A stretch of DNA of 64,000 nt from Rebecca billardiae RCC1528 (lineage: Eukaryota; Protista; Haptophyta): contig OZ251228.1 of the NCBI GenBank assembly GCA_965240325.2, positions 2,852,001-2,916,000 of the forward strand. Reading direction: 5' to 3'. The position numbers and the translations under genes were made by a program. The notes under the pieces are model-generated. The model was not told where the DNA came from and did not search any database. It worked only from the letters and a program-made list of their open reading frames with translations. Shown here piece by piece: positions 17,623-64,000 of the stretch. Within the stretch, counting starts at the first letter, position 1, and every line of letters starts with the position of its first letter.

Positions 17623-18338
17623 CCACGGCAACGCCATTGAACTGTGAAGGCTCGTGCGCGTGAGAAGGCGCGCCGCAGCGGCCGCGGGGGCGCCGCAGTC
17701 GCAAGGTCGTCGGGTAGTCGGCTCGGAATCTCGGAATCTCGGATCAGGATTCAGGATGACTTAGACTATGAGTGAGGGCTCGAATTTCGACTAGATGGCT
17801 CGGATGCGGCCGCGCCATCACTTTGATTATATAGTCGCGTGTCGACGCGATGACAGACCCTCAACGATCATCGATAGATCCGCCACGATCGATACGACGC
17901 GCGATGATTCAATTGACGATGCATCAGCATCATGACTTGAATCATGTGAGCATGCCCATGCCCATCGGGCATCATGCCATGGCCGATGGCGCGCGCGGCG
18001 TCGTCGTCATCAATGACCGCGCCCATCATGATGTACGCGCCGCGGGCATCACCGCGCATCAGAGAGAGAGAGAGATACACACATCTGATGTGCAGCACCC
18101 GACGCACAAGGCACATGTGACATGACCGCAGTGGCGCAGTTGGGCGGATACCCTTTCGCGTCGCAAGGTGACGCGCGAGAGGCCGGTCGCCGCGGCCGAG
18201 CGGCGTGGCTGTGCCGCCTACATGCTGGGCGCCCATGGACTTGACTTCGCCGCGCGCGCTGAGGCTGGCGGGCGTCGCGATCGTTAACGACACAGGTACA
18301 GGGGGGTCCAGATGGTGGGCCCCACTTTGGCGGTGGCT

Positions 18339-19424
18339 GGCCAGGTAGTGCGGCACGTCCGTGCCTCTGGACGGGCATTGAGCGGTGGCGAGGTCGCCAA
18401 ATGGCGTGGCGTGGTCCCAGACAAGGTTGTTACTAGTCCTGATCAGCTCGCTAGCCATGTCGGTCGATGATCGCCTCGCCGTTGACAGGCGCGCACACGC
18501 TGCACACGTATTCGCACGGTAGCCGTGTCGGACGGCGGTCGCACGACTACCGCGCAGTCAACATTGATCGTCAGACTCGCGGTGTGTTGGGTCAGACGGA
18601 ACATTGACTGGTCTGCACCGTCGCAAGGCAGACCAAAAAGGTCGGCATGGCCGTCGGAACAGTGATCCTGGTCCCTGCTTCCCATTCTTCCCATGCGCAG
18701 CCTCACGCGCGCGCCGGTCGCACGAGGACGTGGACGTGGACGTGAGTGAGAGTGGTCGAAAAGTCGGAAAGGAAGCTGTCACTCATGCCCATGCGCTCGT
18801 ACGACCGCACCAACCTGCCTACGCCACGCCCCGGTGACCCGGCCGTGGCGCTGGGGCCTTCGAGCAGCGCACGCGCAGCAGATGGTCGCAATGCTCACAG
18901 CGGTAGCCGAGCGTCGGCGAGAGGCCGTCGGGCACGAAGTCGTCGCCGCTGAGCACGTAGCTGCCGGACTCACCGCACGCTTCGCACGTGAGGTGCTGCA
19001 CCATGTCCTCTTCCAGCATCTCCATGCTCATGAGGACATTGCCGCGCGGCCCGGCGTTGCGCTTCTCCTCAATCTCAGCAGCTGCCTTGGCCTCGTGGAC
19101 GTGGGAGTTGTGCTTGCTGGGTGGGCTGAACATGGCGTCGTAGTTGAAGCGCACCGGCGAGACATGCTCGCGATGCGGGCGCTCGATTCTGCATCGCGAG
19201 AGGAGGTTCGCCCTCCGCGTGCCGGCCGCACTTGCAGCTGCGCCAGCCGACGCCGGCGGCGGTGCCGCCGGCGGCGGCGTCGACGCTCCAGCCTCCTGCT
19301 CGCCGAGCCCACGTTCGAGCATCCGATCGATGCGCTTGCCGGGATTCGCATGCCTCTCCAGCGTCGCGACGTGTGCGACTTTGCGCCTACGTCGCGCCTC
19401 GTTGAACGCCGCGATGCTCGGCAT
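18339..19424 (-). pseudogene. Degenerate Mutator-like transposase (N-terminal zinc ribbon to first catalytic Asp region), frameshifted
   Basis: HLTCEACG...GLSPTLGYRCEHC zinc ribbon, then RLVRSYERMGMSDSFLSDFSTTL, then LTINVDCA..HGYRANT..VNGEAIID in shifting frames. Order and content match the Mutator-like transposase pattern CxxC..GL..CxxC..N.R.V....G.G...F....(I/V).VDG.W..R.GY.S..G......GK.LD. Confidence 0.6.
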
Positions 19425-19549
19425 CGCTGGCGCACGTGCTTGCGGCCGCGTTTGAACCCGGCCTCCCGCGCCCGGCCCGACTACCGAGTGATGCAGTTCG
19501 GAGCCGCTGCGCCAGCCGGACCCCGACGAATTCCCAGACGACAACCTTA

Positions 19550-21148
19550 ATGAGCCGCAAGCGTGATCACGCCGGATGCACCACGCGGCCTCACTTCGGC
19601 GTGGCAGGTGACGGGCGCGCCAGCCGGTGCGCTGCGCACAAGCTGGACGGCATGGTTGACGTGAGGAGCCCAAAGTGTGATTACGAGGGCTGCACCAAGG
19701 GGCCTTACTTCGGCATGCCAGGCGACGCGCGCGCCAGCCGGTGCGCCACGCACAAGCTGGCCGGCATGGTCGACGTGAGGAGCCTCAAGTGTGATCACAC
19801 CGGCTGCACCACGCAGCCTTCGTTCGGCATGCCGGGCGACGCGCGCGCCAGCCGGTGCGCTACGCACAAGCTAGCCGGCATGGTCGACGTGAAGAGCCGC
19901 CAGTGTGATCACGCCGGCTGCACCAAGCAGCCTGCGTTCGGCATGCCAGGTGACGCGCGCGCCAGCCGGTGTGCTGCGCACAAGCTGGCCGGCATGGTCG
20001 ACGTGAGGCACCCCAAGTGTGATCACGCTGGCTGCACCACGCAGCCTGCGTTCGGCATGCCGGGCGACGCGCGCCCCAGCCGGTGCGCTGCGCACAAGCT
20101 GGCCGGCATGGTCGACGTGAGGAGCCCAAAGTGTGATCACGCGGGCTGCACCAAGGGGCCTTCGTTCGGCATGCCGGGCGACGCGCGCGCCAGTCGGTGC
20201 GCTACGCACAAGCTGGCCGGCATGGTCGACGTGAAGCACCCCAAGTGTGATCACACAGGCTGCACCAAGGTGCCTTCGTTCGGCATGCCGGGCGACGCGC
20301 GCGCTAGCCGGTGCGCTGCGCACAAGCTGGCCGGCATGGTCGACGTGAAGAGCCGCAAGTGTGACCACACCGGCTGCACCACGGTGCCTGCGTTCGGCAT
20401 GCCGGGCGACGCGCGCGCCAGCCGGTGTGCTACGCACAAGCTGGCCGGCATGGTATGCAGTCGGCTCGCCGCCCCCAAGGGCAGGCTGGGGCATGGTGCC
20501 GGCGACCAGGGCACGCGCGCCGCGAGGCGATACAAACGCAGCAGCCGCATTGCGGCTGTCTCGGACGCTGCGCCGCGGCTGCCCGCACCCACGCCGCTGG
20601 TCGCAGTCAGCATCGTCCGCTGGCGCGCGCCAGATGGCACGATCCATTCGGTTGATGACGGGGTGGTCAATGATGGTGCCCTGGGCCTGGACCAGCGGCA
20701 TCTGTGTGGCAACGCAGGTGGCGATGCAATCCGGGCTGCCAGTGGCATCTACGAGCAGGGACTACTAGCAGGCATCAACACCACCGCTGCGCCAGGACTA
20801 CCATCATCATCGATGGCAGCGGCGGGAGCACGACGACAGCAACCACAAATCGTACCTGTGGTGATGGCGAGGAGGGCCTGGGTCGATGCTGGCGGCTGCT
20901 CAGAAGCGCGTCACAGCTCCGGAGTCTCCAGGCTCGAAAGAGGCAACGAGGCGGTGAGTTGCCGAATGCCACCACACGGCGGTGTCGGTGACGCAGACAC
21001 CGAATCTGACTACGACCGTTGGACCGTGATGTCGCATGCGATCTGCCGTCGTCGTCGTCGTCTTAGCGTAGTGGTAGTACATATATATATATATATATAT
21101 ATGCGGTATAGCAGTTATATACTCATCACTATAGCAGTTACTATATGA
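19550..21148 (+). CDS. EsV-1-7 cysteine-rich repeat protein, 8 x 38-aa repeats (array ~19556-20455); true 3' end uncertain because the ORF runs into (TA)n
   Basis: Repeat KCDHxGCTxxPxFGMPGDARASRCAxHKLAGMVDVxxx is C-x4-C-x16-C-x2-H, matching the EsV-1-7 motif; 114-bp tandem DNA unit. Confidence 0.85.
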   Translation: MSRKRDHAGCTTRPHFGVAGDGRASRCAAHKLDGMVDVRSPKCDYEGCTKGPYFGMPGDARASRCATHKLAGMVDVRSLKCDHTGCTTQPSFGMPGDARASRCATHKLAGMVDVKSRQCDHAGCTKQPAFGMPGDARASRCAAHKLAGMVDVRHPKCDHAGCTTQPAFGMPGDARPSRCAAHKLAGMVDVRSPKCDHAGCTKGPSFGMPGDARASRCATHKLAGMVDVKHPKCDHTGCTKVPSFGMPGDARASRCAAHKLAGMVDVKSRKCDHTGCTTVPAFGMPGDARASRCATHKLAGMVCSRLAAPKGRLGHGAGDQGTRAARRYKRSSRIAAVSDAAPRLPAPTPLVAVSIVRWRAPDGTIHSVDDGVVNDGALGLDQRHLCGNAGGDAIRAASGIYEQGLLAGINTTAAPGLPSSSMAAAGARRQQPQIVPVVMARRAWVDAGGCSEARHSSGVSRLERGNEAVSCRMPPHGGVGDADTESDYDRWTVMSHAICRRRRRLSVVVVHIYIYIYMRYSSYILITIAVTI

Positions 21149-21598
21149 TCATCATAATCTCAGTCTCATTCAGAGCATGCGCATGCATATATATATATGT
21201 CTAGCCACTCCGCCATGCCCGGCTCGTACAAGGCGTCGGGTACGAATGGACTCTGGAGCTGGATGGTCGCGGCGCGCGGCGTCGTGGAGTAGACAGACCA
21301 CAATGATCAATCATGGAACGATCAGGTTAGCTATGTTGGGATTTGAGCAACGAACGACAGCAGGCGCTGGCAGCGGCGTGGCGGTTGAGCTGCTGCCCGA
21401 GGTCGAGAGGGCGCCCGCGAGTCCCGTTTATAAGTTGGAGCGGGCGTCCAAGTAGTCGTTGATGAATCCCGTTTAGAAATAGAAGAGACGAGGACTGCGC
21501 GGCCGCGCGCGCACGATCGATCGCGACGCGCGGCGAGCAGACACGCGTCAGAGTGCGCCGCACCCGCGCGACGCACGGGCGCGAGGCGAGCGCGTATC

Positions 21599-22068
21599 TC
21601 AAACGATGAAGCGTGCGGGTTGACGCGACAGCGGCGAGAGCAAGAGACCATTGCATGAGGGGCGACGCGGCGAAGACAGATGATGACGTCGCGCCGCCGA
21701 ACGATCAGGCGGGGAGCCGGGCCACACAGACAGCCAGCGACCTTACCGAGCAGAGGGGCTGCGGCGACTGCGGTGCACCTCCTGCAGCGGAGCGTGCACC
21801 CGGCAGTGCCCGATGCAGGCGATTCCCTTGCCCAGCTCGGCGCCTTCGTCGTGAGCAGCCCCATGGCGCCCCCGAGAGCGAAGCCTGATCGATCCGATGT
21901 GAGCGGTAACCAACCGAGTCCTGCAGGTGCGCCGCTGTGGGCCAGATTGGCAGCGCACCAGGACTCCTGCGCGCGGCGGTGCGCACAGGACAACGCAGGA
22001 ATGCCGTGCGAGCCGGATTCTTGGCGTCGCTCATAGACACTCAGTTATAGGTTCCCTATAACGCCACA
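21599..22068 (+). mobile_element. Right-end fragment of a TA-targeting TIR element; near-identical to 39158-39630
   Basis: ORFs 21613..21888 and 39172..39447 translate identically. Both copies end cagttataggttccctataacgccaca followed by (TA)n. Confidence 0.85.
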
Positions 22069-22352
22069 TATATATATATCAAATATATATATATATATAT
22101 TATTGGTCCGCGGCGCCCGGCAGAATAAACTAATGCGCGCCAGCAGTGGCGGCCGCCGGCCGCGTCAGGCACGCTCTACGGCTCCTGCTGATCGGATGGC
22201 AAGACGACGAGACTAGAGAGTGGCACGACTACTGAGAGTGAGACGTAGTACTACGCACTACGTCACTACGTGAGTCCGTGACTACTAGTACTACGACGAG
22301 CAGCAAGCGCTTAGCACCGAGCACTGGCAGGCTGCTCGCAGCAGGCCGCTCG

Positions 22353-36316: not shown

Positions 36317-37405
36317 TCACCCCGTAGGCCGTACCCGCCTGGCCATCACCACGGGTCGTGCACGCGACGGCGTCGTTACGACGCTGGCTGTGACCAGCGG
36401 CGGCAGCTGCGACGGCCGCCGCGCTGCCACAACGTCCGAGGCAGTGGCTGTGCTGCTGGTGCGCTTCCGCTGTCGCTTGGCGGCGCTCACTTCTTTGGTG
36501 CTCACGACTTGCTCCAGCCCGCGCTTGTGCGCACAACTCCGACGGCGCTTCATACCGGCCAGCTTGTGCGTAGCGCACCGGCTGGCACGCGCATCGTCGG
36601 GCATGCCGAACGCAGGCCGCGTGGTGCAGCCGGTGTGATCGCACTTGGGGTTCCTCACGTCGACCATGCCGGCCAGCTTGTGCGGAGCGCACCGGCTGGC
36701 GCGCGCGTCGCCCGGCATGCCGAACGAAGGCAGGGTGGTGCAGCCGGTGTGATCACACTTGCGGCTCACCACATCGACCATGCCGGCCAGCTTGTGCGTA
36801 GCGCACCGGCTGGCGCGCGCGTCGCCCGGCATGCCGAAGTAAGGCACCTTGGTGCAGCCTGCGTGATCACACTTTGGGCTCCTCACGTCGACCATGCCAG
36901 CCAGCTTGTGCGTGGCGCACCGGCTGGCGCGTGCGTCACCCGGCATGCCGAACGAAGGCCCCTTGGTGCAGCCGGTGTGATCACACTTGGGGCTCCTCAC
37001 GTCGACCATGCCGGCCAGCTTGTGCGTAGCGCACCGGCTGGCGCGCGCGTCGCCCGGCATGCCGAACGAAGGCCGCGTGGTGCAGCCGGTGTGATCACAC
37101 TTGGGGTGCCTCGCGTCGACCATGCCGGCCAGCTTGTGCTCAGCACACCGGCTGGCGCGCGAGTCACCCGGCATGCCGAACGCAGGCACCTTGGTGCAGC
37201 CGGTGTGATCACACTTGCGGCTCTTCACGTCGACCATGCCGTCCAGCTTGTGCGCAGCGCACCGGCTGGCGCGCGAGTCGCCCGGCATGCCGAAGTGAGG
37301 CCGCGTGGTGCAGCCGGTGTGATCACACTTGCGGCTCTTCCGGTTGACCATGCCGGCCAGCTCGTTGCGCAGCCTCTTGGCGTGCTCTTGGTTGCCCTGC
37401 GCGTG
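36317..37405 (-). CDS. Second EsV-1-7 repeat protein, 7 x 38-aa repeats (array ~36551-37345); 5' end apparently interrupted at 37406
   Basis: Same C-x4-C-x16-C-x2-H repeat as the 19550 copy. Basic tail KRRRS..KRQRKR; shares PLV...S(I/V)V and PVVMARR with copy 1. Confidence 0.8.
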   Translation of the reverse strand, partial: HAQGNQEHAKRLRNELAGMVNRKSRKCDHTGCTTRPHFGMPGDSRASRCAAHKLDGMVDVKSRKCDHTGCTKVPAFGMPGDSRASRCAEHKLAGMVDARHPKCDHTGCTTRPSFGMPGDARASRCATHKLAGMVDVRSPKCDHTGCTKGPSFGMPGDARASRCATHKLAGMVDVRSPKCDHAGCTKVPYFGMPGDARASRCATHKLAGMVDVVSRKCDHTGCTTLPSFGMPGDARASRCAPHKLAGMVDVRNPKCDHTGCTTRPAFGMPDDARASRCATHKLAGMKRRRSCAHKRGLEQVVSTKEVSAAKRQRKRTSSTATASDVVAARRPSQLPPLVTASVVTTPSRARPVVMARRVRPTG

Positions 37406-37603
37406 CAGTTTACTATGATTTAACGTGCACACTTGGTTAAGGCGTGATTATCGATTTAACGCCAACCATTAGTAGTACGGTCGTGTCCGGTGGGGACTTC
37501 GGAAAGGAAGCCATGGCGGGCGGATGCCCGTCCCACCGCGATCCAAGGCGCGTGTGGCACGTCTCGGACCCGGGGGCATGCCACACGCCGGTCGGCGTCG
37601 CCA

Positions 37604-38075
37604 TACGAGCATGTGGGCATGAGCGACAGCTTCCTTTCCGACTTTTCGACCACTCTCACGTCCACGTCCACGTCCTCGTGCGACCGGCGCGCGCGTGAGG
37701 CTGCGCATGGGAAGAATGGGAAGCAGGGACCAGGATCACTGTTCCAACGGCCATGCCGACCTTTTTGGTCTGCCTTGCGACGATGCAGGCCAGTCAATGT
37801 TCCGTCTGACCCAACACACCGCGAGTCTGACGATCAATGTTGACTGCGCGGTAGTCGTGCGACCGCCGTCCCACACTGTTGCCGGCCGCGTGCGAATACT
37901 CAGTGTGCAGCGTGTGCGCGCCTGTCAACAGCGAGGCGATCATCGACCGACATGGCTAGCGAGCTGATCAGGACTAGTAACAACCTTGCCTGGGACCACG
38001 CCACGCCATTTGGCGACCTCTCCACCGCGCTCAATGCCCGTCCAGAGGCACGGACGTGCCGCACTACTCCTGGCC
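37604..38075 (+). pseudogene. Second fragment of the Mutator-like transposase relic, an inverted homolog of 18339-18802
   Basis: ORFs 37695..37967(+) and 18443..18706(-) are near-identical; DNA identity is visible throughout. Confidence 0.75.
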
Positions 38076-38298: not shown

Positions 38299-39769
<1,471 letters not shown>

Positions 39770-39986: not shown

Positions 39987-42900
39987 TCACATGTCCTCGA
40001 GGCTCAGCCTGGGCACGATGTTCATCGACTGCAGCTCCTGCAGCAGGAGCTTGCACGCGTACGGTAAGCGCATCGGCTGCGTGTGCACGGACGTGCGGCA
40101 GTTGCGGCAGCCCAGGTGGTGGCACAGCAGCCCGCACTTCTTGCACACGTGCGCGGTGAAGCCGTCGGACGAGTGCACGAGCCGCTCGTTCAGCAGCATC
40201 GACGCGCCGTACCCGATGAGGCAGTCGCGCTCCATCTCGCCCAGCCGCAGCCCGCCGTCGCGCGAGCGGCCCTCGGTCGGCTGGCGCGTGAGCACGGCGC
40301 GCGGCCCCCTCGCGCGCGCGTGCATCTTGTCCATCACCATGTGCTTGAGCTTCTGGTAGTAGATCGGCCCGAAGAAGATGTACGCGGCGAGCGGCTCGCC
40401 CGTGATGCCGGACGTGACGTAGTCCTTGCCCGAGTAGGAGAAGCCGTGCGAGACGAGCACGCGCGCGCACTCGTCGACCTTGTCGCCGCCGAACGCCGTG
40501 CCGTACCGCAGCTGCCCGTCGCACACCGCCGCCTTCCCCGCGACCAGCTCCATCATCTTGCCCACGGTCATGCGCGAGGGGAAGCCGTGCGGGTTCATCA
40601 CGACGTCGGGCGCCATGCCCAGGTCGTTGAACGGCAGGTCCTCCTGCGAGACGATCAGGCCGCACACGCCCTTCTGCCCGTGGCGCGAGGAGAACTTGTC
40701 GCCCAGCTCGGGCGAGCGCGTCGAGCGCACGCGGATCTTGAGCACGTAGTGGTCGTTCTCGTTGGAGGAGATCATGACGCGGTCGACGTACGTGTCGTGG
40801 TGCGGGGGGCCCTTGTACGTGACGGGCGCGGGCCTGTACGCGTCCACGCCCGTGCCGTGCAGCACCTCGGTGTTGGTGATCGTGTCGGAGGTGTTGAGCG
40901 GCACCTGCTTGTTCACGAAGATGTCGCCCGACTGCAGCCGCTCGCCCGGCGCGCAGATCCCGTCCGCGTCCAGCGTGCGGTACCGCTGCTGCTGCACCGA
41001 CTTGGTGCCCGCCGGCGGCTGCGGCGGCCCGACGATCCTGTCTGCGGTCTGGTTGGCGTACTTCTTCAGGTTGGCGGAGTACTTGCGCATCACGATGCAG
41101 CGGCCGAAGCCGCGGTCGAGCGAGGCGCGGTTCAGGATGAGCGCGTCCTCGATGTCGTACCCGGAGTACGACATCACCGCCACGATCGCGTTGTGGCCTG
41201 CGAGGGCGCCGCGCGCGCGCGCGCGCGGTGCGTGAGCGGGCGGCACGCGCCGCGCGCGCGCGCGCGCGCGCGCGCCGCACCCGCGGGCAGCTTTGCAAAG
41301 TCGATCATGTCGATGGTGCGGCTCTTGACGAGCGGCTGGTGCGGGTACACGAGCAGGTAGAGGATCGTGTCGATGCGCTCGCCCTGGTTGCACGCGATCG
41401 CGCCCATCGCCTGCTTGCCCATCGCGCACTGGTACGTGTTGCGCGGCGACTGGTTGTGGTGCGGGTACGGGATCAGGCCCGCGCACACGCCCAGGATGGT
41501 GAGCGGGTCGATCTCGAGGTGCGTCGTGCGCGCGCAGATGTCGCGCTCGTACAGCGCGATCTCCGCCGAGTTCTCCTCGTTCACGTCGAGGTACTCCACC
41601 AGCCCCTCGCGGATGAAGTCCTGCCAGTCGCGCACGCCCTCGCTCAGCTCCGCGAGGTGCTCGGGCTGCACGCCGAGCGCGCCGCGCTCGACGACGATGA
41701 GCGGGCGGCACACGCGCCCCGCGTCCGCCGCGATGTGCACCGCGCGCTGCGTGGCGTGCAGCTGCACGCTCACGAACTCGCCCAGCCGGCCCGAGCGCCT
41801 GAGCATCCGCAGCGCGCGCACGAGCCTCTCAGGCTCGCGGTGCACGCCCAGCAGCATCCCGTTGATGAAGACGAGCGCGCACGGGCTGTCGACGCGGCCG
41901 AAGTCGAGGCCGGGCAGGAGGTGCACGTCCTCCACGCCCAGGTTGATCGCGAGCCGCGCGATCGGCGCCTCGTCGTCGTCCGTCGTCACGTGCGTCGTGA
42001 GCGCCAGGTTCTTGACGAGGCCGCACGCCTCGCCCTCGGGCGTGTCTGACGGGCAGAGCATGCCCCACTGCGACGGCTGCAGCGAGCGCGGGCCCGAGAC
42101 CTTGCGCGTCTTCTCGAACTGCGACATGATGCGCGTCATCATGCCCAGCGCCTGCCACGCGCGCGCCGCGCGGGCGGTGCGTGAACGGGCGGTGCGTGAA
42201 CGGGCGGTGCGTGAACGGGCGGTGCGTGAACGGGCGGTGCGTGCGTGGACGCGCGCGCGCGCGCAACCCACCGCGGCGCTCGCGCGTCGTGCGCGCGGCG
42301 GCGCGCGCGCGTGCGCACCGAGATGAAGGAGAGGCGCGAGAGCACCTGCGTCACGCCGGAGCGCTCCATCTTGAAGCGCTTGACCGACCAGTTGCCCGTG
42401 GAGATGGCGTGCGTGAAGCCCAGGCTGATCGTGTCCTGCCGGATGCACTTGGCAATGTCGAACTGCGCCGCGCGCGTCGGCTTGCTGAGCACGCTGTCCG
42501 CCTGCCGCTTGAGCTCGGCGCACAGCTTCTTGAAGAGGTCCTCGAAGAGGAGGGAGAGCAGCTGGCCCGCCAGCTCGAGCCGCTTGTTGCCGTAGTAGTC
42601 CATGTCGTCCGTGAGCGACGGCTCGTGCTGCGCCGCGATCATGCGCCGCAGCATCTGGCACACGTACACCACCTGTGACGCGGGGGCAGGCGGAGGGAGG
42701 GAGGGGCGGGCGCGGCGCGAGGCTCAGGCGGCGCGGCGCGGCGCACGCGGCTGGCGCGCCCCCGCCCGCGCGCCGCGCCGCGCGGCGCCGCGCTCCACCT
42801 TGGGCCAGAAGTTGTACTGCACGACCGGCACGTGCGCGAGCACCACGTTGGCGAGGATGTCGCGCGCCTCGTCCACGCGCGTCTGGCGCGCGGAGCCGCC

Positions 42901-44025
42901 CCACGGCCGGCCGTACACGCGGATCTTGTGCGAGATGAACTCGAGCGCCTTGGCCTGCGTGGTGATGCCGAGGTTGACCGCGTCGCGCATCGACGTCGCC
43001 ATCCCCTCCACGTACTCGCGCTCCATCCCGATCAGCTGCAGGATCTCCTGGTCGCACTCGACGCCCATGCCGCGCAGCACGACCACGATCGGCACGTCCT
43101 CCGTCATCGTGTTGTGCCGCAGCAGGATCGCGCCGTTGTGCGTGATCAGGTTCGTCTTGGACTTGCGCTCGTGCGTGGAGGAGGTGACCGACGCCATCAC
43201 CTTGCCCTTCGCGTCCCTGCCCACGATGATCCTGTTCTTGCTCAGCTGCTCCTGGATGAGCACCACCTGCACGCACGGCACAGGGGGGCGGGGCGGGCGG
43301 GCGGGCGGGCGGGCATCGGGGAACGGCACGCGCGGTATGCGCTGCGCACTGTGCTCGGTGCGCGCTGTGCGCTGCGCGCTGTGCCGTGTGCGCGCTGTGC
43401 TGTGCGCTGTGCTGTGCGCTGTGCGCACCTTCTCGACGCCGCGCACGATAAAGTAGCCGCCCGGGTCTAACGGGCACTCGCCCGCGCGCGCGAGCTCCTC
43501 GGCCGACTTGCCGTGGAGGACGCACTTGGACGAGCGCAGCATGATCGGCATGCGGCCGATCTTCACGCCGCGCTTGCGCACGAGCTCCTTCGGCCCGCGC
43601 GTGTACTCGAGCGAGACGACGATGGGCGCGGAGTAGGTGATGTCGCGCAGCCGGCACTCCTGCGGCTTGATCTCGGACACGATCATCTCCTCCTCGACGG
43701 AGGGCTTGCCCACGCTGACGTCGGTGAAGCGCAGGCTCCAGTTCTGGTCCGCGTCGCACGTCACCTTCTCGTTCGCCTTGACGATGTGCTTGATGTCCAC
43801 GTTCACAAAGTGGTTGAACGAGTCGATGTGCTGCTTCACGAGCCCGCGCACCTTGAGGAACGCGGGCAGCAGGCGCCACTTCTCCTCGACGGTCTTGATC
43901 GGGCGCTCGAGCGGCGCGTCGCCGTCGTACAGGCACTTGAGCTCCTCCTCCTCGTCGCCGAGCAGCGCGCGCACCTCCTCTCTCCTCCCCAGGGGAGGCT
44001 TGCCCTCCTCGTCGCCGGCCGCCAT
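39987..44025 (-). CDS. POLR3B: DNA-directed RNA polymerase III second-largest subunit; introns ~43267-43428, 42673-42798, 42152-42318, 41198-41280
   Basis: [24 protein letters not shown] (RPC2-specific), [93 protein letters not shown]. Confidence 0.97.
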
Positions 44026-44289
44026 CGTGGGACTGGCGAGCGGTCCAGCCAGCGCCGCCCGGGCCGGCCCCGGACTTTCGGCTGCGCCGGAACGCAGCTG
44101 GGCAGGCACGGAGGCGTGCGAAGAGGTCGGCACACCTCGTCGGCTCGCCCCTGGCGGGACGGACGGCGCGGCGAGGAGCGCGCGCGCCGGGCGCCGTTCG
44201 TCCGCGTTGCGCACCGCATCGGCCCCGCCGCCCATCCGGCCCCGGCCCGCGGGCCGTGTCTCGGGCACCGCGCGCAGCGGCGCGGTGCC
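44026..44289. promoter_or_regulatory. Probable bidirectional promoter between RPC2 and CNOT11 (264 bp between ATGs)
   Basis: Two conserved genes have head-to-head start codons separated by a very short interval. Confidence 0.6.
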
Positions 44290-45948
44290 ATGCTCGCCGA
44301 GCCCAAGGAGCTGTCCGCGCTGCTCGAGCTGCTCAAGGAGGAGGAGAAGCCGCTCGAGGCGGTCTCGCAGGCGTTCCACCGCGCGTTCGGCCGCGCCGAC
44401 CACTTCCGCGTCGCGTGCGCCCTCTGCGCCATGCTCACCGACGGGCTCATCGCCTCGGCGGCGCAGCGGCTGGTCGGTCTCTTCCTGCTGCACGACGTGT
44501 ACCGGGGCGAGCCGCCGGCGACGCACCCGTTCCTCGAGTTCCTCGCGGAGCAGCTGGCGCGCGCGCAGGGCGGGGCGGGGGGCCGCGTGGAGCACAACCT
44601 GCTGTGCCTCCTCCTCGCCGACCCGCCCAACAAGGACCTGAGCAAGCGCTCGGCGCTCGAGATCCGAGCGTCGCTCGGCGCGGGCGAGCCGCTGCCGCTG
44701 CCCGACCTGGGCGAGCTGCAGCGCGCGGCGGCGGAGCGCGAGCGGCACATGCCCGTGCTCAGGCGACGGGGCGTGCACCCCACCATCCCGATCGCCGCCG
44801 GCGCGCCAGACGCGCAGCTGCGCGGCGCGGGCGAGGGCGGCGCGCTGCCTCTGTCGCTCGCCGCGCGCGCGGCCGCGGAGGCGGGACCCTCGGCGGGCCC
44901 GGCGGCGGCGGCGGTGGCGGCGGGGCTCAGCGAGCTGTCGCTCGCGGCACACGAGCCCGCCTTCGTGCGCCCGCCGCCGCCCTTACTCGCGCCCACGCAG
45001 GAGGAGGTGCTCTGGCTCAGCCCGTGCGTCGAGGGCGCGGAGCTGCTGTGGGACAACTCGATGTGCTCGGACAACGCCAAGGGCACAGAGGTGCGCGAGC
45101 TGATGAGCAAGGCGTTCAAGGTGCGCGCGCGGGGCGCGCGGGGCGCGCGGGGCAGGGAGGCGGGGGCGGGGAAGGGCGGGGCGGGGCGAGGCGAGGCGAG
45201 GGCGCACGCCGCCGCTCTGCGCGCGGCGCGCGTGCGCTGCGCACGCTCGCCGCGCGCGCGTGCGCGCGACGCGCGCCGACACCGCCGCACGCCCGGCGCC
45301 GCGCGCGCCGCGCTCGGCGTGGTCGCGCGCGCAGGGCCCGCTCGTGCCGCAGCAGCAGCAGCAGGTCCTCTCCGAGCTCGAGACGGACGCGAAGCTGGTG
45401 TACCACTGCGGCCTCACGCCCAAGCGGCTGCCCGAGCTCGTCGAGAACAACCCGGTGATCGCGATCGAGGTGCTGCTCAAGCTGATGGCCTCCTCGCAGA
45501 TCACCGACTACTTCTCGGTGCTGGTCAACATGGACATCTCGCTGCACTCGATGGAGGTGAAAGGCGGGGGCGGGGCGGGGGCGGTGCGGCCGCGGGGGTG
45601 CGCGTGCGGGGCGCGCCGCGCGCCCACGCGCGCGCTGAGCGCGCGGCTGCCGCGCGGCGGGCGCGCGGCGGCGCGCAGGTGGTGAACCGGCTGACGACGG
45701 CGGTCGACCTGCCCACCGAGTTTGTGCACCTGTACATCTCCAACTGCATCTCGAGCTGCGAGAACATCAAGGACAAGTACATGCAGAACCGCCTGGTGCG
45801 CCTCGTGTGCGTGTTCCTGCAGTCGCTGATCCGCAACAAGATCATCAACGTGCACGACCTGCTCGTGGAGGTGCAGGCCTTCTGCATCGAGTTCAGCCAC
45901 ATTCGCGAGGCGGCCGGCCTCTTCCGGCTGCTCAAGACGCTCGAGTGA
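44290..45948 (+). CDS. CNOT11: CCR4-NOT complex subunit 11; introns ~45121-45334 and 45557-45678
   Basis: [113 protein letters not shown]. Confidence 0.96.
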
Positions 45949-60074: not shown

Positions 60075-63000
60075 GCAAGAATGCGCAGAGTAGCACCTCC
60101 GCCTCCCTCCCACCCGCGAGCCTCGCGCCGCACGACTGAGCCGAGAAGCAGCAGCAGCCTGCTCCGCCACCGCAGGCCTGCGGCCTCAGGGCTGCGGCTC
60201 GGGCGCGAAGCGGCAGCCCTGCGGGCGCGCGGGCGTGAGGAGTGGCGGCGGCGCGGCCTGCAGCGCGGCTCCGAGCGAGCATGTGCGGCAAGGATGCGCC
60301 TTTCAGCATCGCCGCCACCCGCCCACCCGCTCGCCTCGCGCCGCGCGACTGAGCCGAGCAGCAGCAGTCCGCAGGCCTGCGGCCGCAGGGCTGCGGCTCG
60401 GGCGCGGAGCCGCAGCCCTGCGGGCGCGCGGCCGTGAGGAGTGGCGGCGGCGCGGCATGCAGCGCGGCTCGAGACGAGCATGGGCGTCGAGGACGCGCCA
60501 ATCAGCACCGCCGCCACCCTCCCACCCGCGAGCCTCGCGCCGCACGACTGAGCCGAGCAGCAGCAGCAGCCTGCTCAGCCACCGCAGGCCTGCGGCCGCA
60601 GGGCTGCGGCTTGGGCGCGGAGCCGCAGCCCTGCGGGCGCGCGGCCGTGAGGAGTGGCGGCGGCGCGGCATGCAGCGCGGCTCGGAGCGAGCATGGGCGT
60701 CGAGGACGCGACAATCAGCACCGACGCCACCCGCCCGCCCGCTCGCCTCGCGCCGCGCGACTGAGCCGAGCAGCAGCAGCAGCCTGCTGGGCCGCCGCAG
60801 GCCTGCGGCCGCAGGGCTGCGGCCGCAGGGCTGCGGCTCGGGCACGGAGCCGCAGCCCTGCGGGCGCGCGGGCGTGAGGAGTGGCGGCGGCGCGGCATGC
60901 AGCGCGGCTCGGAGCGAGCATGGGCGTCGAGGACGCGCCAATCAGCACCGACGCCACCCACCCGCCTGCTCGCCTCGCGCCGCGCGACTGAGCCGAGCAG
61001 CAGCAGCAGCCTGCTGGGCCACCGCAGGCCTGCGGCCGCAGGGCTGCGGCTCGGGCGCGGAGCCGCAGTCCTGCGGGCGCGCGGCCGTGAGGAGTGGCGG
61101 CGGCACGGCATACAGCACGGCTCGAAGCGAGCATGGGCGCCGATGACGCGTCAAGAAGCACCGCTGTCACCCGCCCGCCCGCTCGCCTCGCGCCGCGCGA
61201 CTGAGCCGAGCAGCAGCAGCCTGCTGGGCCACCGCAGGCCTGCGGCCGCAGGGCTGCGGCTCGGGCGCGGAGCCGCAGCCCTGCGGGCGCGCGGGCGTGA
61301 GGAGTGGCGGCGGCGCGGCATGCAGCGCGGCTCGGAGCGAGCATGGGCGTCGAGGACGCGACAATCAGCACCGACGCCACCCACCCGCCCGCTCGTCTCG
61401 CGCCGCGCGACTGAGCCGAGCAGCAGCAGCAGCCTGCTGGGCCACCGCAGGCCTGCGGCCGCAGGGCTGCGGCCGCAGGGCTGCGGCTCGGGCGCGGAGC
61501 CGCAGCCCTGCGGGCGCGCGGCCGTGAGGAGTGTTGGCGGCGCGGCATGCAGCGCGGCTCGGAGCGAGCATGGGCGGCGAGGACGCGCCACTCAGCACCG
61601 CCGCCACCCTCCCGCCCGCTCGTCTCGCGCCGCGCGACTGAGCCGAGCAGCAGCAGCAGCCTGCTGGGCCACCGCAGGCCTGCGGCCGCAGGGCTGCGGC
61701 TCGGGCGCGGAGCCGCAGCCCTGCGGGCGCGCGGGCGTGAGGAGTGGCGGCGGCGCGGCATGCAGCGCGGCTCGGAGCGAGCATGGACGGCGAGGACGCG
61801 TCATTCAGCACCGCCGCCACCCGCCTGCCCGCTCGCCTCGCGCCGCGCGACTGAGCCGAGCAGCAGCAGCAGCCTGCTGGGCCACCGCAGGCCTGCGGCC
61901 GCAGGGCTGCGGCTCGGGCGCGGAGCCGCAGCCCTGCGGGCGCGCGGCCGTGAGGAGTGTTGGCGGCGCGGCATGCAGCGCGGCTCGGAGCGAGCATGGG
62001 CGGCGATGACGCGCCAATCAGCACCGCCGCCACCCGCCCGCCCGCTCGCCTCGCGCCGCGTTACTGAGCCGAGCAGCAGCAGCAGCCTGCTGGGCCACCG
62101 CAGGCCTGCGGCCGCAGGGCTGCGGCCGCAGGGCTGCGGCTCGGGCGCGGAGCCGCAGCCCTGCGGGCGCGCGGGCGTGAGGAGTGGCGGCCGCGCGGCA
62201 TGCAACGCGGCTCGGAGCGAGCATGGGCGTCGAGGACGCGCCAATCAGCACCGCCGCAACCCGTTCTCCCGCTCGTCTCGCGGCGCGCGACTGAGCCGAG
62301 CAGCAGCAGCAGCCTGCTGGGCCACCGCAGGCCTGCGGCCGCAGGGCTGCGGCCGCAGGGCTGCGGCTCGGGCGCGGAGCCGCAGCCCTGCGGGCGCGCG
62401 GGCGTGAGGAGTGGCGGCGGCGCGGCATGCAGCGCGGCTCGGAGCGAGCATGGACGGCGAGGACGCGTCGTTCAGCACCGCCGCCACCCGCCCGCCCGCT
62501 CGTCTCGCGGCGCGCGACTAAGCCGAGCAGCAGCAGCAGCCTGCTGGGCCACCGCAGGCCTGCGGCCGCAGGGCTGCGGCCGCAGGGCTGCGGCTCGGGC
62601 GCGGAGCCGCAGCCCTGCGGGCGCGCGGGCGTGAGGAGTGGCGGCGGCGCGGCATGCAGCGCGGCTCGGAGCGAGCATGGACGGCGAGGACGCGTCATTC
62701 AGCACCGCCGCCACCCGCCTGCCCGCTCGCCTCGCGCCGCGCGACTGAGCCGAGCAGCAGCAGCAGCCTGCTGGGCCACCGCAGGCCTGCGGCCGCAGGG
62801 CTGCGGCTCGGGCGCGGAGCCGCAGCCCTGCGGGCGCGCGGCCGTGAGGAGTGTTGGCGGCGCGGCATGCAGCGCGGCTCGGAGCGAGCATGGGCGGCGA
62901 TGACGCGCCAATCAGCACCGCCGCAACCCGCCCGCCCGCTCGCCTCGCGCCGCGTTACTGAGCCGAGCAGCAGCAGCAGCCTGCTGGGCCACCGCAGGCC

Positions 63001-64000
63001 TGCGGCCGCAGGGCTGCGGCTCGGGCGCGGAGCCGCAGCCCTGCGGGCGCGCGGGCGTGAGGAGTGGCGGCGGCGCGGCATGCAGCGCGGCTCGGAGCGA
63101 GCATGGACGGCGAGGACGCGTCGTTCAGCACCGCCGCCACCCGCCCGCCCGCTCGTCTCGCGGCGCGCGACTAAGCCGAGCAGCAGCAGCAGCCTGCTGG
63201 GCCACCGCAGGCCTGCGGCCGCAGGGCTGCGGCCGCAGGGCTGCGGCTCGGGCGCGGAGCCGCAGCCCTGCGGGCGCGCGGGCGTGAGGAGTGGCGGCGG
63301 CGCGGCATGCAGCGCGGCTCGGAGCGAGCATGGACGGCGAGGACGCGTCATTCAGCACCGCCGCCACCCGCCTGCCCGCTCGCCTCGCGCCGCGCGACTG
63401 AGCCGAGCAGCAGCAGCAGCCTGCTGGGCCACCGCAGGCCTGCGGCCGCAGGGCTGCGGCTCGGGCGCGGAGCCGCAGCCCTGCGGGCGCGCGGCCGTGA
63501 GGAGTGTTGGCGGCGCGGCATGCAGCGCGGCTCGGAGCGAGCATGGGCGGCGATGACGCGCCAATCAGCACCGCCGCAACCCGCCCGCCCGCTCCCCTCG
63601 CGCCGCGTTACTGAGCCGAGCAGCAGCAGCAGCCTGCTGGGCCACCGCAGGCCTGCGGCCGCAGGGCTGCGGCTCGGGCGCGGAGCCGCAGCCCTGCGGG
63701 CGCGTGGCCGTGAGGAGTGGCGGCGGCGCGGCATACAGCGCGGCTCGGAGCGAGCATGGCCGTCAAGGACGCGCCAATCAGCACCGCCGTCACCCGCTTT
63801 GCCGCTCGCCTCGCGCCGCGCGACTGATCCGAGCAGCAGCAGCAGCCTGCTGGGCCACCGCAGGCCTGCGGCCGCAGGGCTGCGGCCGCAGGGCTGCAGC
63901 TCGGGCGCGGAGCCGCAGCCCTGCGGGCGCGCGGCCGTGAGGAGTGGCGACGGTGCGGCATGCAGCGCGGCTCGGAGCGAGCATGGGCGTCGAGGACGCG
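60075..64000. repeat. GC-rich satellite, 213/227-bp units, ~18 copies, running off the window end
   Basis: Recurrent 70-aa (213-nt) ORFs. The 227-bp variant has an extra 14-mer (gcggccgcagggct). Identical ORFs at 62472 and 63125 show a 653-bp higher-order unit. Confidence 0.97.

Follow-up and report, generated by a model that had tools for sequence, protein, structure and literature searches.

Two inverted EsV-1-7 repeat genes of Rebecca billardiae RCC1528: a conserved block of units, replacements at fixed codons and a probably mosaic history

Introduction

How do two neighbouring genes built from the same tandem unit come to carry different numbers and combinations of that unit, and what keeps such arrays in a genome? 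The question is raised by a 64,000-nt stretch of DNA from the haptophyte Rebecca billardiae RCC1528 (assembly GCA_965240325.2, contig OZ251228.1, positions 2,852,001 to 2,916,000 of the forward strand), which was analysed as a whole and is called the window here; positions are those of the window unless a contig or locus is named. The gene of interest is the open reading frame (ORF) at 36317–37432 on the reverse strand, named copy 2, with units B1–B7. A related ORF on the forward strand (19436–21148), named copy 1, with units A1–A8, is placed 17 kb from it in inverted orientation. L-numbers (e.g. L005, L013 and L053) denote loci fetched from this genome, and C-numbers denote its contigs. A preliminary description of copy 2, made from the sequence alone, took the two arrays for cassettes whose repeats are shuffled by recombination and which may have outlived a linked transposase.

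Our analysis points to a different history. We consider it probable that copy 2 is an EsV-1-7 gene made mosaic by loss and gain of units and by exchange with a paralog, with hypervariable codons under selection and an array that reads nucleic acid.

Results

Unit order is conserved in a shifted register

Both copy 2 and copy 1 are EsV-1-7 repeat proteins (PF19114), consisting of tandem units without any other recognised domain. The Pfam hidden Markov model (HMM), with a gathering score of 25 bits, matched copy 2 in seven stretches (317.6 bits, E value 6.2e-97) and copy 1 in eight (366.4 bits, E value 3.5e-112); the single further Pfam row for copy 2 was a sub-threshold zf-MIZ match, and a PDB sequence search with copy 2 returned zero matches at E ≤ 1. 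The repeat numbers given in the preliminary description, seven for copy 2 and eight for copy 1, are exact by translation and by Tandem Repeats Finder (TRF). Translation of copy 2 gave units at an exact spacing of 38 aa, with TRPH, KVPA, TRPS, KGPS, KVPY, TLPS and TRPA at unit positions 8–11 of B1–B7 and the linkers KSR, RHP, RSP, RSP, VSR and RNP, and TRF placed a tandem repeat at 36551–37362 (period 114, 7.1 copies, 89 % matches, zero indels); the copy 1 array measures 7.9 copies by TRF and eight units by translation. The ligand pattern C-x4-C-x16-C-x2-H is intact in 14 of the 15 units, the exception being A1, which has Arg at the first Cys. As had also been noticed, both arrays start with the same kind of unit: TTRPH and KLDG are present in the first unit of each, and the D at position 29 is rare, being found in 8 of ~337 sampled family units.

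Paired in register (A1–A7 with B1–B7), the arrays show zero correspondence (exact P 0.35), and end-anchored pairing gives an exact P of 0.67. With a shift of two units, A3–A8 pair one to one with B1–B6 at 7.2 % nucleotide divergence, and the best blastn alignment of the arrays (19749–20454 versus 37369–36663) has 92.2 % identity. The collinear distance of this pairing is 0.072 versus at least 0.087 for others, the two arrays being reciprocal best partners among the ~40 sampled arrays. When a unit-level Needleman–Wunsch score was set against 5000 shuffles of unit order, the comparison of copy 1 with copy 2 returned P 0.002, or P 0.007 with the end units fixed; the positive control, the tandem duplicates L020 and L021, returned P 0.0006, and ten other arrays compared with copy 2 returned P > 0.1. 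The pairing of A3–A7 with B1–B5 is the best among all 120 pairings (exact P 0.008). Within the shifted register, the T/K pattern at position 8 agrees in 6/6 paired units, the linkers KSR, RHP and RSP are identical and in the same order, and A4 and B2 have backbone variants in common. The shifted-register alignment, the permutation test and the exact tests therefore show that a block of five to six units has kept its order, with a shift of two units. The proposed shuffling of unit order is not supported. The opposite pattern, colinear units with only point mutations, is found in part: the units are collinear over a block of five to six, where the differences are codon substitutions at hypervariable positions.

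Replacements are concentrated at about ten codons

About ten fixed positions of the unit (4, 8, 9, 11, 25 and 34–38) were treated as hypervariable and the remainder as scaffold. Between partner units, 15 of 166 scaffold codons differ, all by a single nucleotide and about 11 of them silently, for a ratio of nonsynonymous to synonymous rates (dN/dS) of 0.10. At the hypervariable positions, 25 of 55 codons differ, 7 of them at two or three nucleotides, and dN/dS is 1.42; the replacement-to-silent ratio differs between the two classes (Fisher P 0.001). From these two values it follows that selection maintains the arrays and that they diversify at fixed sites. The scaffold is under purifying selection and both arrays are retained genes, as the preliminary description had suggested they might be.

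The same positions vary throughout the family. We fetched 64 loci, which yielded 44 arrays of 3–19 units (~380 units in all), and calculated variation over the 337 non-terminal units. C6, C23 and H26 are kept in 337/337 units and C1 in 336/337, and H3, P10, G13, G16, K27, L28, G30 and M31 are 96–99 % conserved. Position 9, by contrast, takes 14 different residues, with a ratio of nonsynonymous to synonymous diversity (piN/piS) of 9.8; the ratio is 5.8 at position 25 and 1.6–4.2 at positions 34–37, and diversity is high at positions 4, 8 and 11. Residues 8 and 9 vary together (TR versus KQ, KG, KV or KW). The codons replaced between the partner units of copy 1 and copy 2 are those that are hypervariable family-wide, and the alternative states are mostly common ones in the family. 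The small vocabulary that had been ascribed to the pair is likewise a property of the whole family, whose sampled units use 69 different words at positions 8/9/11 and 85 in the linker.

Leader, tail and block appear to have different histories

The copy 2 tail has counterparts with 88–93 % DNA identity at C11:2403085 and C7:3906392 as well as in no fewer than 35 further places, and the copy 1 tail is 85–87 % identical to those of L013 and L005; compared with each other as DNA, the two tails gave zero detectable match. At the protein level they have three motifs in common (KRxLE, AAKRQxKRT and PVVMARR). Divergence of the tails, as described earlier, is thus real in the sense that the copies have no DNA match, but it is not decay, since each tail is 85–93 % identical to the tails of other members; the two represent subfamilies of a single conserved tail. 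The copy 2 leader (~30–35 residues by translation, …RLRNELAGMVN…) is found also in L053 and L054, and only in local paralogs. Copy 2 has a leader and tail from another subfamily than those of copy 1, while its internal block resembles copy 1, and thus appears to be a mosaic gene. A conversion tract or an ectopic exchange would leave just such a structure, with a block like that of an inverted neighbour set inside flanks of another subfamily.

The first unit of copy 2 is itself composite in appearance. Up to nt 86, B1 has the rare H11 and D29 as well as R9 and A25 in common with A1, and it has the linker (nt 96–111) in common with A3, so that it looks like an A1/A3 hybrid. Changes in unit number are seen in other members as well: L020 (7 units) and L021 (9 units) have a collinear core in common, and the internal duplications of three units in L044 (C11:2401585–2404916) and of eight units in L063 (C14:2460290–2464338) are clear traces of multi-unit unequal crossing-over.

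A sequence of events that would produce copy 2 can be proposed. Units would be lost and gained by unequal crossing-over, and a crossover between unit 1 and unit 3 would delete two units and leave an A1/A3-like hybrid as B1, in which case the changes private to A1 would represent decay after the crossover. The two inverted neighbours would have exchanged ~0.7 kb of array, through either gene conversion or an ectopic event, and substitution driven by selection at the hypervariable codons would have come on top of this exchange. The earlier suggestion that recombination or gene conversion diversifies the arrays therefore survives for the mosaic of leader and tail versus block, for the unit number and for the hybrid B1, but not for the order of units.

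Copy 1 and copy 2 belong to a large family

A PF19114 family search of the 72-Mb assembly found at least 2267 first-look unit candidates on many contigs; 150 of these were scored, and 150/150 passed the Pfam cut-off. With a few hundred paralogs in the genome, copy 1 and copy 2 form no closed pair. A DNA search with the whole copy 2 ORF listed 39 other places at 85–91 % identity, from 250 first-look candidates, and copy 1 is absent from these 39. Units are ~90 % identical in DNA across contigs of this genome, and public protein databases returned no close relative, the best matches being 46–65 % identical and for the most part metagenomic; the sources that carry a name include an 'uncultured virus', Coccomyxa, Effrenium and Ectocarpus.

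In many paralogs (L007, L008, L011–L016 and L050), the array is entered mid-unit at the conserved '…GDARASRCAAHKLAGM…', preceded by an unrelated, often Pro-rich translation. This point of entry looks like an intron acceptor, and such genes may have an upstream exon outside the ORF lists.

Relatives carry a predicted nuclease domain

We examined 47 related metagenomic proteins of 377–495 residues, some of them on giant-virus-like contigs. The majority have a conserved C-terminal domain with a near-invariant RPD…E-x-D-E-x-x-H…R-x-NPD motif. For one relative, P0092, the AlphaFold2 (AF2) model had a predicted local distance difference test (pLDDT) score of 85.6. Foldseek matched its residues 261–405 to McrC, Hjc and the R2 restriction-like endonuclease (RLE) (E value 1e-3 to 1e-1, probability up to 0.99), and VIA-align matched them to the homing endonuclease I-Bth0305I (Z 8.6, root-mean-square deviation 3.1 Å, 95/97 residues) and to Vsr (Z 8.0), a Z of ~8 being borderline by VIA-align's own note. 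Because the match list consists of PD-(D/E)XK nucleases throughout and the acidic/His motif is conserved, it is reasonable to predict a Vsr/homing-endonuclease-like PD-(D/E)XK fold for the C-terminal domain of the relatives. The closest full-array relative, P0007 (58 % identity), carries the nuclease-like domain and adjoins a ribonucleotide reductase small subunit on a gene-dense, giant-virus-like contig of 15 kb. We also considered PF10967 (DUF2769) as a distinct domain in the relatives and rejected it, as the precomputed label overlaps the repeats and is sub-threshold.

An array that is fused to a nuclease in relatives would most simply be its DNA-targeting module, and the algal arrays would then be nuclease-free DNA binders. 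Each unit would form a small zinc module, the array would read nucleic acid, most likely DNA, through its hypervariable residues and the basic tail, with its putative nuclear localisation signal (AAKRQRKRT), would bring the protein to the nucleus. Judged on these comparisons, DNA reading is the likeliest function of the array. A wider proposal is more tentative, and we put it forward as possible rather than probable: EsV-1-7 arrays may be a hitherto undescribed modular DNA-recognition device, with units reading via positions 8, 9, 11 and 25 and the linker, which giant viruses would use to aim a Vsr/EDxHD-type nuclease and which the alga may have expanded, through unit gain and loss, exchange and positive selection, into a few hundred KRAB/PRDM9-like genes with nuclease-free, fast-evolving arrays. 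If this is true, the algal array genes would act as regulators, or else as a repertoire directed against mobile elements or viral DNA. Together with the predicted nuclease fusions in virus-like relatives, the locus turns the question of a novel zinc finger into a testable proposal, namely DNA reading via named residues.

Evidence weighing against the mosaic and DNA-reading interpretation

A number of observations count against this account of copy 2. The signal for collinearity comes mainly from hypervariable codons and linkers; scaffold sites alone give an exact P of 0.2, the scaffold being nearly uninformative on order because A3, A5, A6 and A7 have one common backbone. The two-unit register was chosen post hoc, and only the alignment-based tests allow for that choice. 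For 6/7 copy 2 units, a closer unit exists in other sampled arrays (3–7 differences, versus 5–11 to the best copy 1 unit), and B2 is the only one whose nearest unit lies in copy 1. Units in fact form a mixed pool that is weakly structured by array (backbone distance 6.2 % within arrays versus 6.8 % between arrays of equal tail class). As for the hybrid B1, the TTRPH-type units of L063 are nearer to it (4 differences), and painting units by tail subfamily, where the differences amount to 1–3 nt, gave no direction of conversion. The multi-nucleotide changes at hypervariable codons, considered as a sign of templated micro-conversion and rejected as such, have counts that fit independent hits at a raised rate; point mutation suffices for them, and templated micro-conversion is possible but not needed.

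With regard to function, besides the borderline Z scores, the nuclease-like domain is absent from the copy 1 and copy 2 tails (hhalign probability 0.1 %), and a search of the whole genome found one weak match to it. The AF2 model of seven algal units, built on a 114-row alignment of sequences from this genome alone, reached a pLDDT of 35 and is unusable. In addition, the 5′ ends given here are provisional, and the mid-unit entry into the array in many paralogs suggests an upstream exon. The weak nuclease-domain match, at C17:87448–87831 on the reverse strand (29 % identity, E value 8.7e-6), is part of an open frame of 813 codons and may stem from an inserted virus or represent a nuclease of the host.

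Several of these points would also be expected if the two arrays were independent paralogs with no exchange between them, their shifted collinearity being due to chance or to selection for a similar order of recognition words. Such independence is in keeping with the result for backbone sites, with the closer units in other arrays, with the absence of copy 1 from the 39 loci listed for the copy 2 ORF and with leaders and tails that are unrelated at the DNA level. It does not sit well with two arrays that are reciprocal best collinear partners in the sample, with a permutation result that ten other arrays fail to approach, with the agreement at position 8 and in three linkers, with the backbone variants common to A4 and B2, or with the rare combination of H11 and D29 in both first units. 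We therefore regard independent descent without exchange as unlikely, although it is the best of the alternatives, and continue with a mosaic EsV-1-7 gene as the preferred interpretation.

The flanking repeat is MITE-like and non-coding

The preliminary description linked both arrays to frameshifted transposase fragments. The flanks are indeed alike, with an inverted similarity of 93.7 % over 476 bp (18339–18801 versus 38075–37604), but their identity as a transposase does not hold. They belong to a dispersed repeat resembling a miniature inverted-repeat transposable element (MITE), the complete form of which is ~620–635 bp long. In the example at L035:1472–2106, a 12-nt terminal inverted repeat (TACAGGGGGTCC) stands at both ends, 611 nt apart, with TA at both outer edges, a TA that may belong to the repeat itself. 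Copies of the element number at least 592 first-look candidates, with 39 other places at 82–92 % identity. Five flanking ORFs, including one of 284 codons antisense to the start of copy 1, had zero Pfam matches at E ≤ 0.01, and an Rfam scan of the element returned nothing. A transposase in the flank was considered and is ruled out, as a ~635-bp element with terminal inverted repeats leaves no room for one and has zero Pfam domains. The flank is a truncated, non-coding MITE-like repeat that holds no transposase, dead or alive, and the idea that the array was kept after its transposase died is therefore baseless.

The element does have some association with the family. In a small and partly biased sample, five arrays (copy 1, copy 2, L036, L039 and L053) have it upstream, always in one orientation; the flanks fetched for most sampled arrays are free of it, and most of the candidate copies are away from arrays. 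The distance from element to array is 162 bp in L053 versus 169 bp in copy 2, and L053 has the same leader as copy 2; this near-equal spacing and common leader suggest that the element was inserted long ago and duplicated together with part of the family. The copy 1 element is 98.4 % identical to that of L035, which is on another contig, versus 95.1 % to the copy 2 element. The window pair has 6 shared derived sites, 3 of them unseen in 10 other copies (0.14 expected), and may go back either to a joint duplication or to separate insertions.

These data bear on the view that unit-level recombination reshuffles the order and that the array is the domesticated remnant of a transposon with a decayed transposase, serving as an immune-like repertoire. 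The different unit numbers and the lack of in-register correspondence would suit such a history, as would the element fragment that precedes both arrays, oriented alike with respect to each, and likewise those in L036, L039 and L053, and the fact that units of different genes or contigs can be closer than neighbours within an array. Set against this are the order conserved in the shifted register, an element with terminal inverted repeats and no space for a transposase, ORFs without a Pfam match, the many copies away from arrays, the arrays that have no element nearby and a copy 1 element whose nearest relative is in L035 and not beside copy 2. We judge this history to be improbable, more so than independent descent. 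Removing it takes away a false lead: the arrays are not the cargo of a dead transposon.

The weakest alternative takes the arrays for repeats without a function, either pseudogenes or satellite-like DNA, homogenised by concerted evolution only. It could appeal to the first Cys lost in A1 and to the AF2 model of the algal array, which is not confident, but it is very hard to credit given open frames of 371 and 570 codons at a genomic GC content of ~70 %, the scaffold dN/dS, ligand residues that stay all but fixed (C6, C23 and H26 invariant) while third positions vary and tail motifs conserved in dozens of paralogs.

Features of the window

Features of the two genes and their flanks are listed in Table 1. 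The window has ~63–84 % GC, with GC-rich short tandem repeats and genes split by short introns. The 284-codon antisense ORF (18819–19673, reverse strand) contains CxxC…CxxC pairs and has zero Pfam matches; it sits in a 700-bp spacer, of which a single further copy occurs in the genome (C11:1745616–1746145, 80 % identity). At 39987–44952 on the reverse strand lies a gene for the second-largest subunit of RNA polymerase III (RPC2), whose best named relatives are ~55–71 % identical; it is split by short GC-rich introns, some of which are tandem repeats (e.g. a 15-bp unit × 4.9 at 42171–42243). The sequences at 39154–39666 and 21595–22103 are copies, 98 % identical, of a very young high-copy repeat, with at least 193 candidates in the genome and 41 other places at 97–100 % identity, often paired ~870 bp apart; long (AT)n and (AG)n microsatellites flank its copies, and it is unrelated to the array duplication. 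A long satellite with periods of 213 bp and 440 bp (16 and 9 copies, respectively, ~90 % matches) occupies 60092–64000 and runs off the end of the window.

Table 1. Coordinates and characteristics of copy 2, copy 1 and the flanking MITE-like element in the window
Feature	Position	Strand	Description
Copy 2 open frame	36317..37432	-	371 codons; first in-frame ATG at 37351; leader, 7 EsV-1-7 units and conserved basic tail
Copy 2 units B1–B7	36530..37327	-	Seven tandem 114-bp/38-aa units; C1, C6, C23 and H26 kept in all
Copy 2 tail	36317..36529	-	'RSG/RSC' subfamily; motifs KRGLE, AAKRQRKRT and RPVVMARRV; 70-odd residues; 88–93 % DNA identity to tails in at least 40 further members
Copy 2 leader and upstream spacer	37328..37495	-	Includes a degenerate partial unit (…RLRNELAGMVNRKSRK) common to the L053 and L054 paralogs
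Copy 2 element fragment	37496..38075	+	~635-bp MITE-like dispersed repeat with both ends missing; borders sharp and common to many loci
Copy 1 open frame	19436..21148	+	570 codons; first in-frame ATG at 19550; 8 units and long 'RLA'-type tail
Copy 1 units A1–A8	19562..20473	+	Eight 38-aa units; A1 degenerate (C1>R)
Copy 1 element	18297..18863	-	Upstream of copy 1; distal terminal inverted repeat at 18297–18309; gene-facing end missing

Comparison with known systems

Copy 2 is one more member of the known EsV-1-7 family, which is among the largest families in brown algae. Its member IMM (IMMEDIATE UPRIGHT) controls early development in Ectocarpus and has a specific N-terminal domain followed by five repeats. 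The genes described here resemble the brown-algal proteins, IMM included, in the C-x4-C-x16-C-x2-H repeat, in HMM scores far above the cut-off and in consisting of nearly nothing but tandem repeats, with no other Pfam domain; the families, too, are alike in being large and clustered and in having giant-virus relatives. They differ in their host, which is no brown alga and has a 72-Mb genome of ~70 % GC, in a number of unit candidates that is very high for this genome size (at least 2267) and in units that vary far less, being ~90 % identical as DNA from contig to contig. For comparison, 95–101 EsV-1-7 genes are given for Ectocarpus, up to 335 for Ascophyllum and 31–54 for sister taxa, and the family is viewed as virus-linked and of largely unknown function (bioRxiv 10.1101/2024.02.19.579948, citing Macaisne et al. 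2017). The EsV-1-7 literature surveyed reports neither position-specific diversifying selection nor a nuclease fusion.

The flanking element is reminiscent of Stowaway or Tc1-mariner-like MITEs in its length of ~635 bp, its 12-nt terminal inverted repeat with TA edges, its hundreds of copies at 82–98 % identity and its lack of coding sequence; both window copies are truncated, however, the analysis found no autonomous partner, and the likeness falls short of a superfamily assignment. The relatives of the arrays, in turn, resemble I-Bth0305I and the Vsr/EDxHD nucleases in the fold of their C-terminal domain (Z 8.0–8.6) and in its acidic/His motif, but the window genes are without this domain, and its nuclease role in the relatives is a predicted one.

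The closest parallel in evolutionary behaviour is with tandem C2H2 proteins, the KRAB zinc-finger proteins (KRAB-ZFPs) and PRDM9. These also consist of tandem zinc modules, form large clustered families, gain and lose units by unequal crossing-over and combine a conserved scaffold with an excess of replacements at a small number of fixed sites in each unit. The fold and ligands are unrelated (CCCH over 38 residues in the present case), and neither a KRAB nor a SET effector accompanies the array; the likeness is thus one of evolutionary behaviour only, DNA binding by EsV-1-7 arrays being putative. The EsV-1-7 units of R. billardiae do display the pattern of transcription activator-like effectors (TALEs), PRDM9 and KRAB-ZFPs, in which the scaffold is conserved and replacements are in excess at fixed hypervariable positions. 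In this respect, copy 1 and copy 2 provide a clean pairwise case, with a constrained scaffold, replacements at about ten codons and a change in unit number at the array ends, together with an array whose history appears to be at odds with that of its leader and tail.

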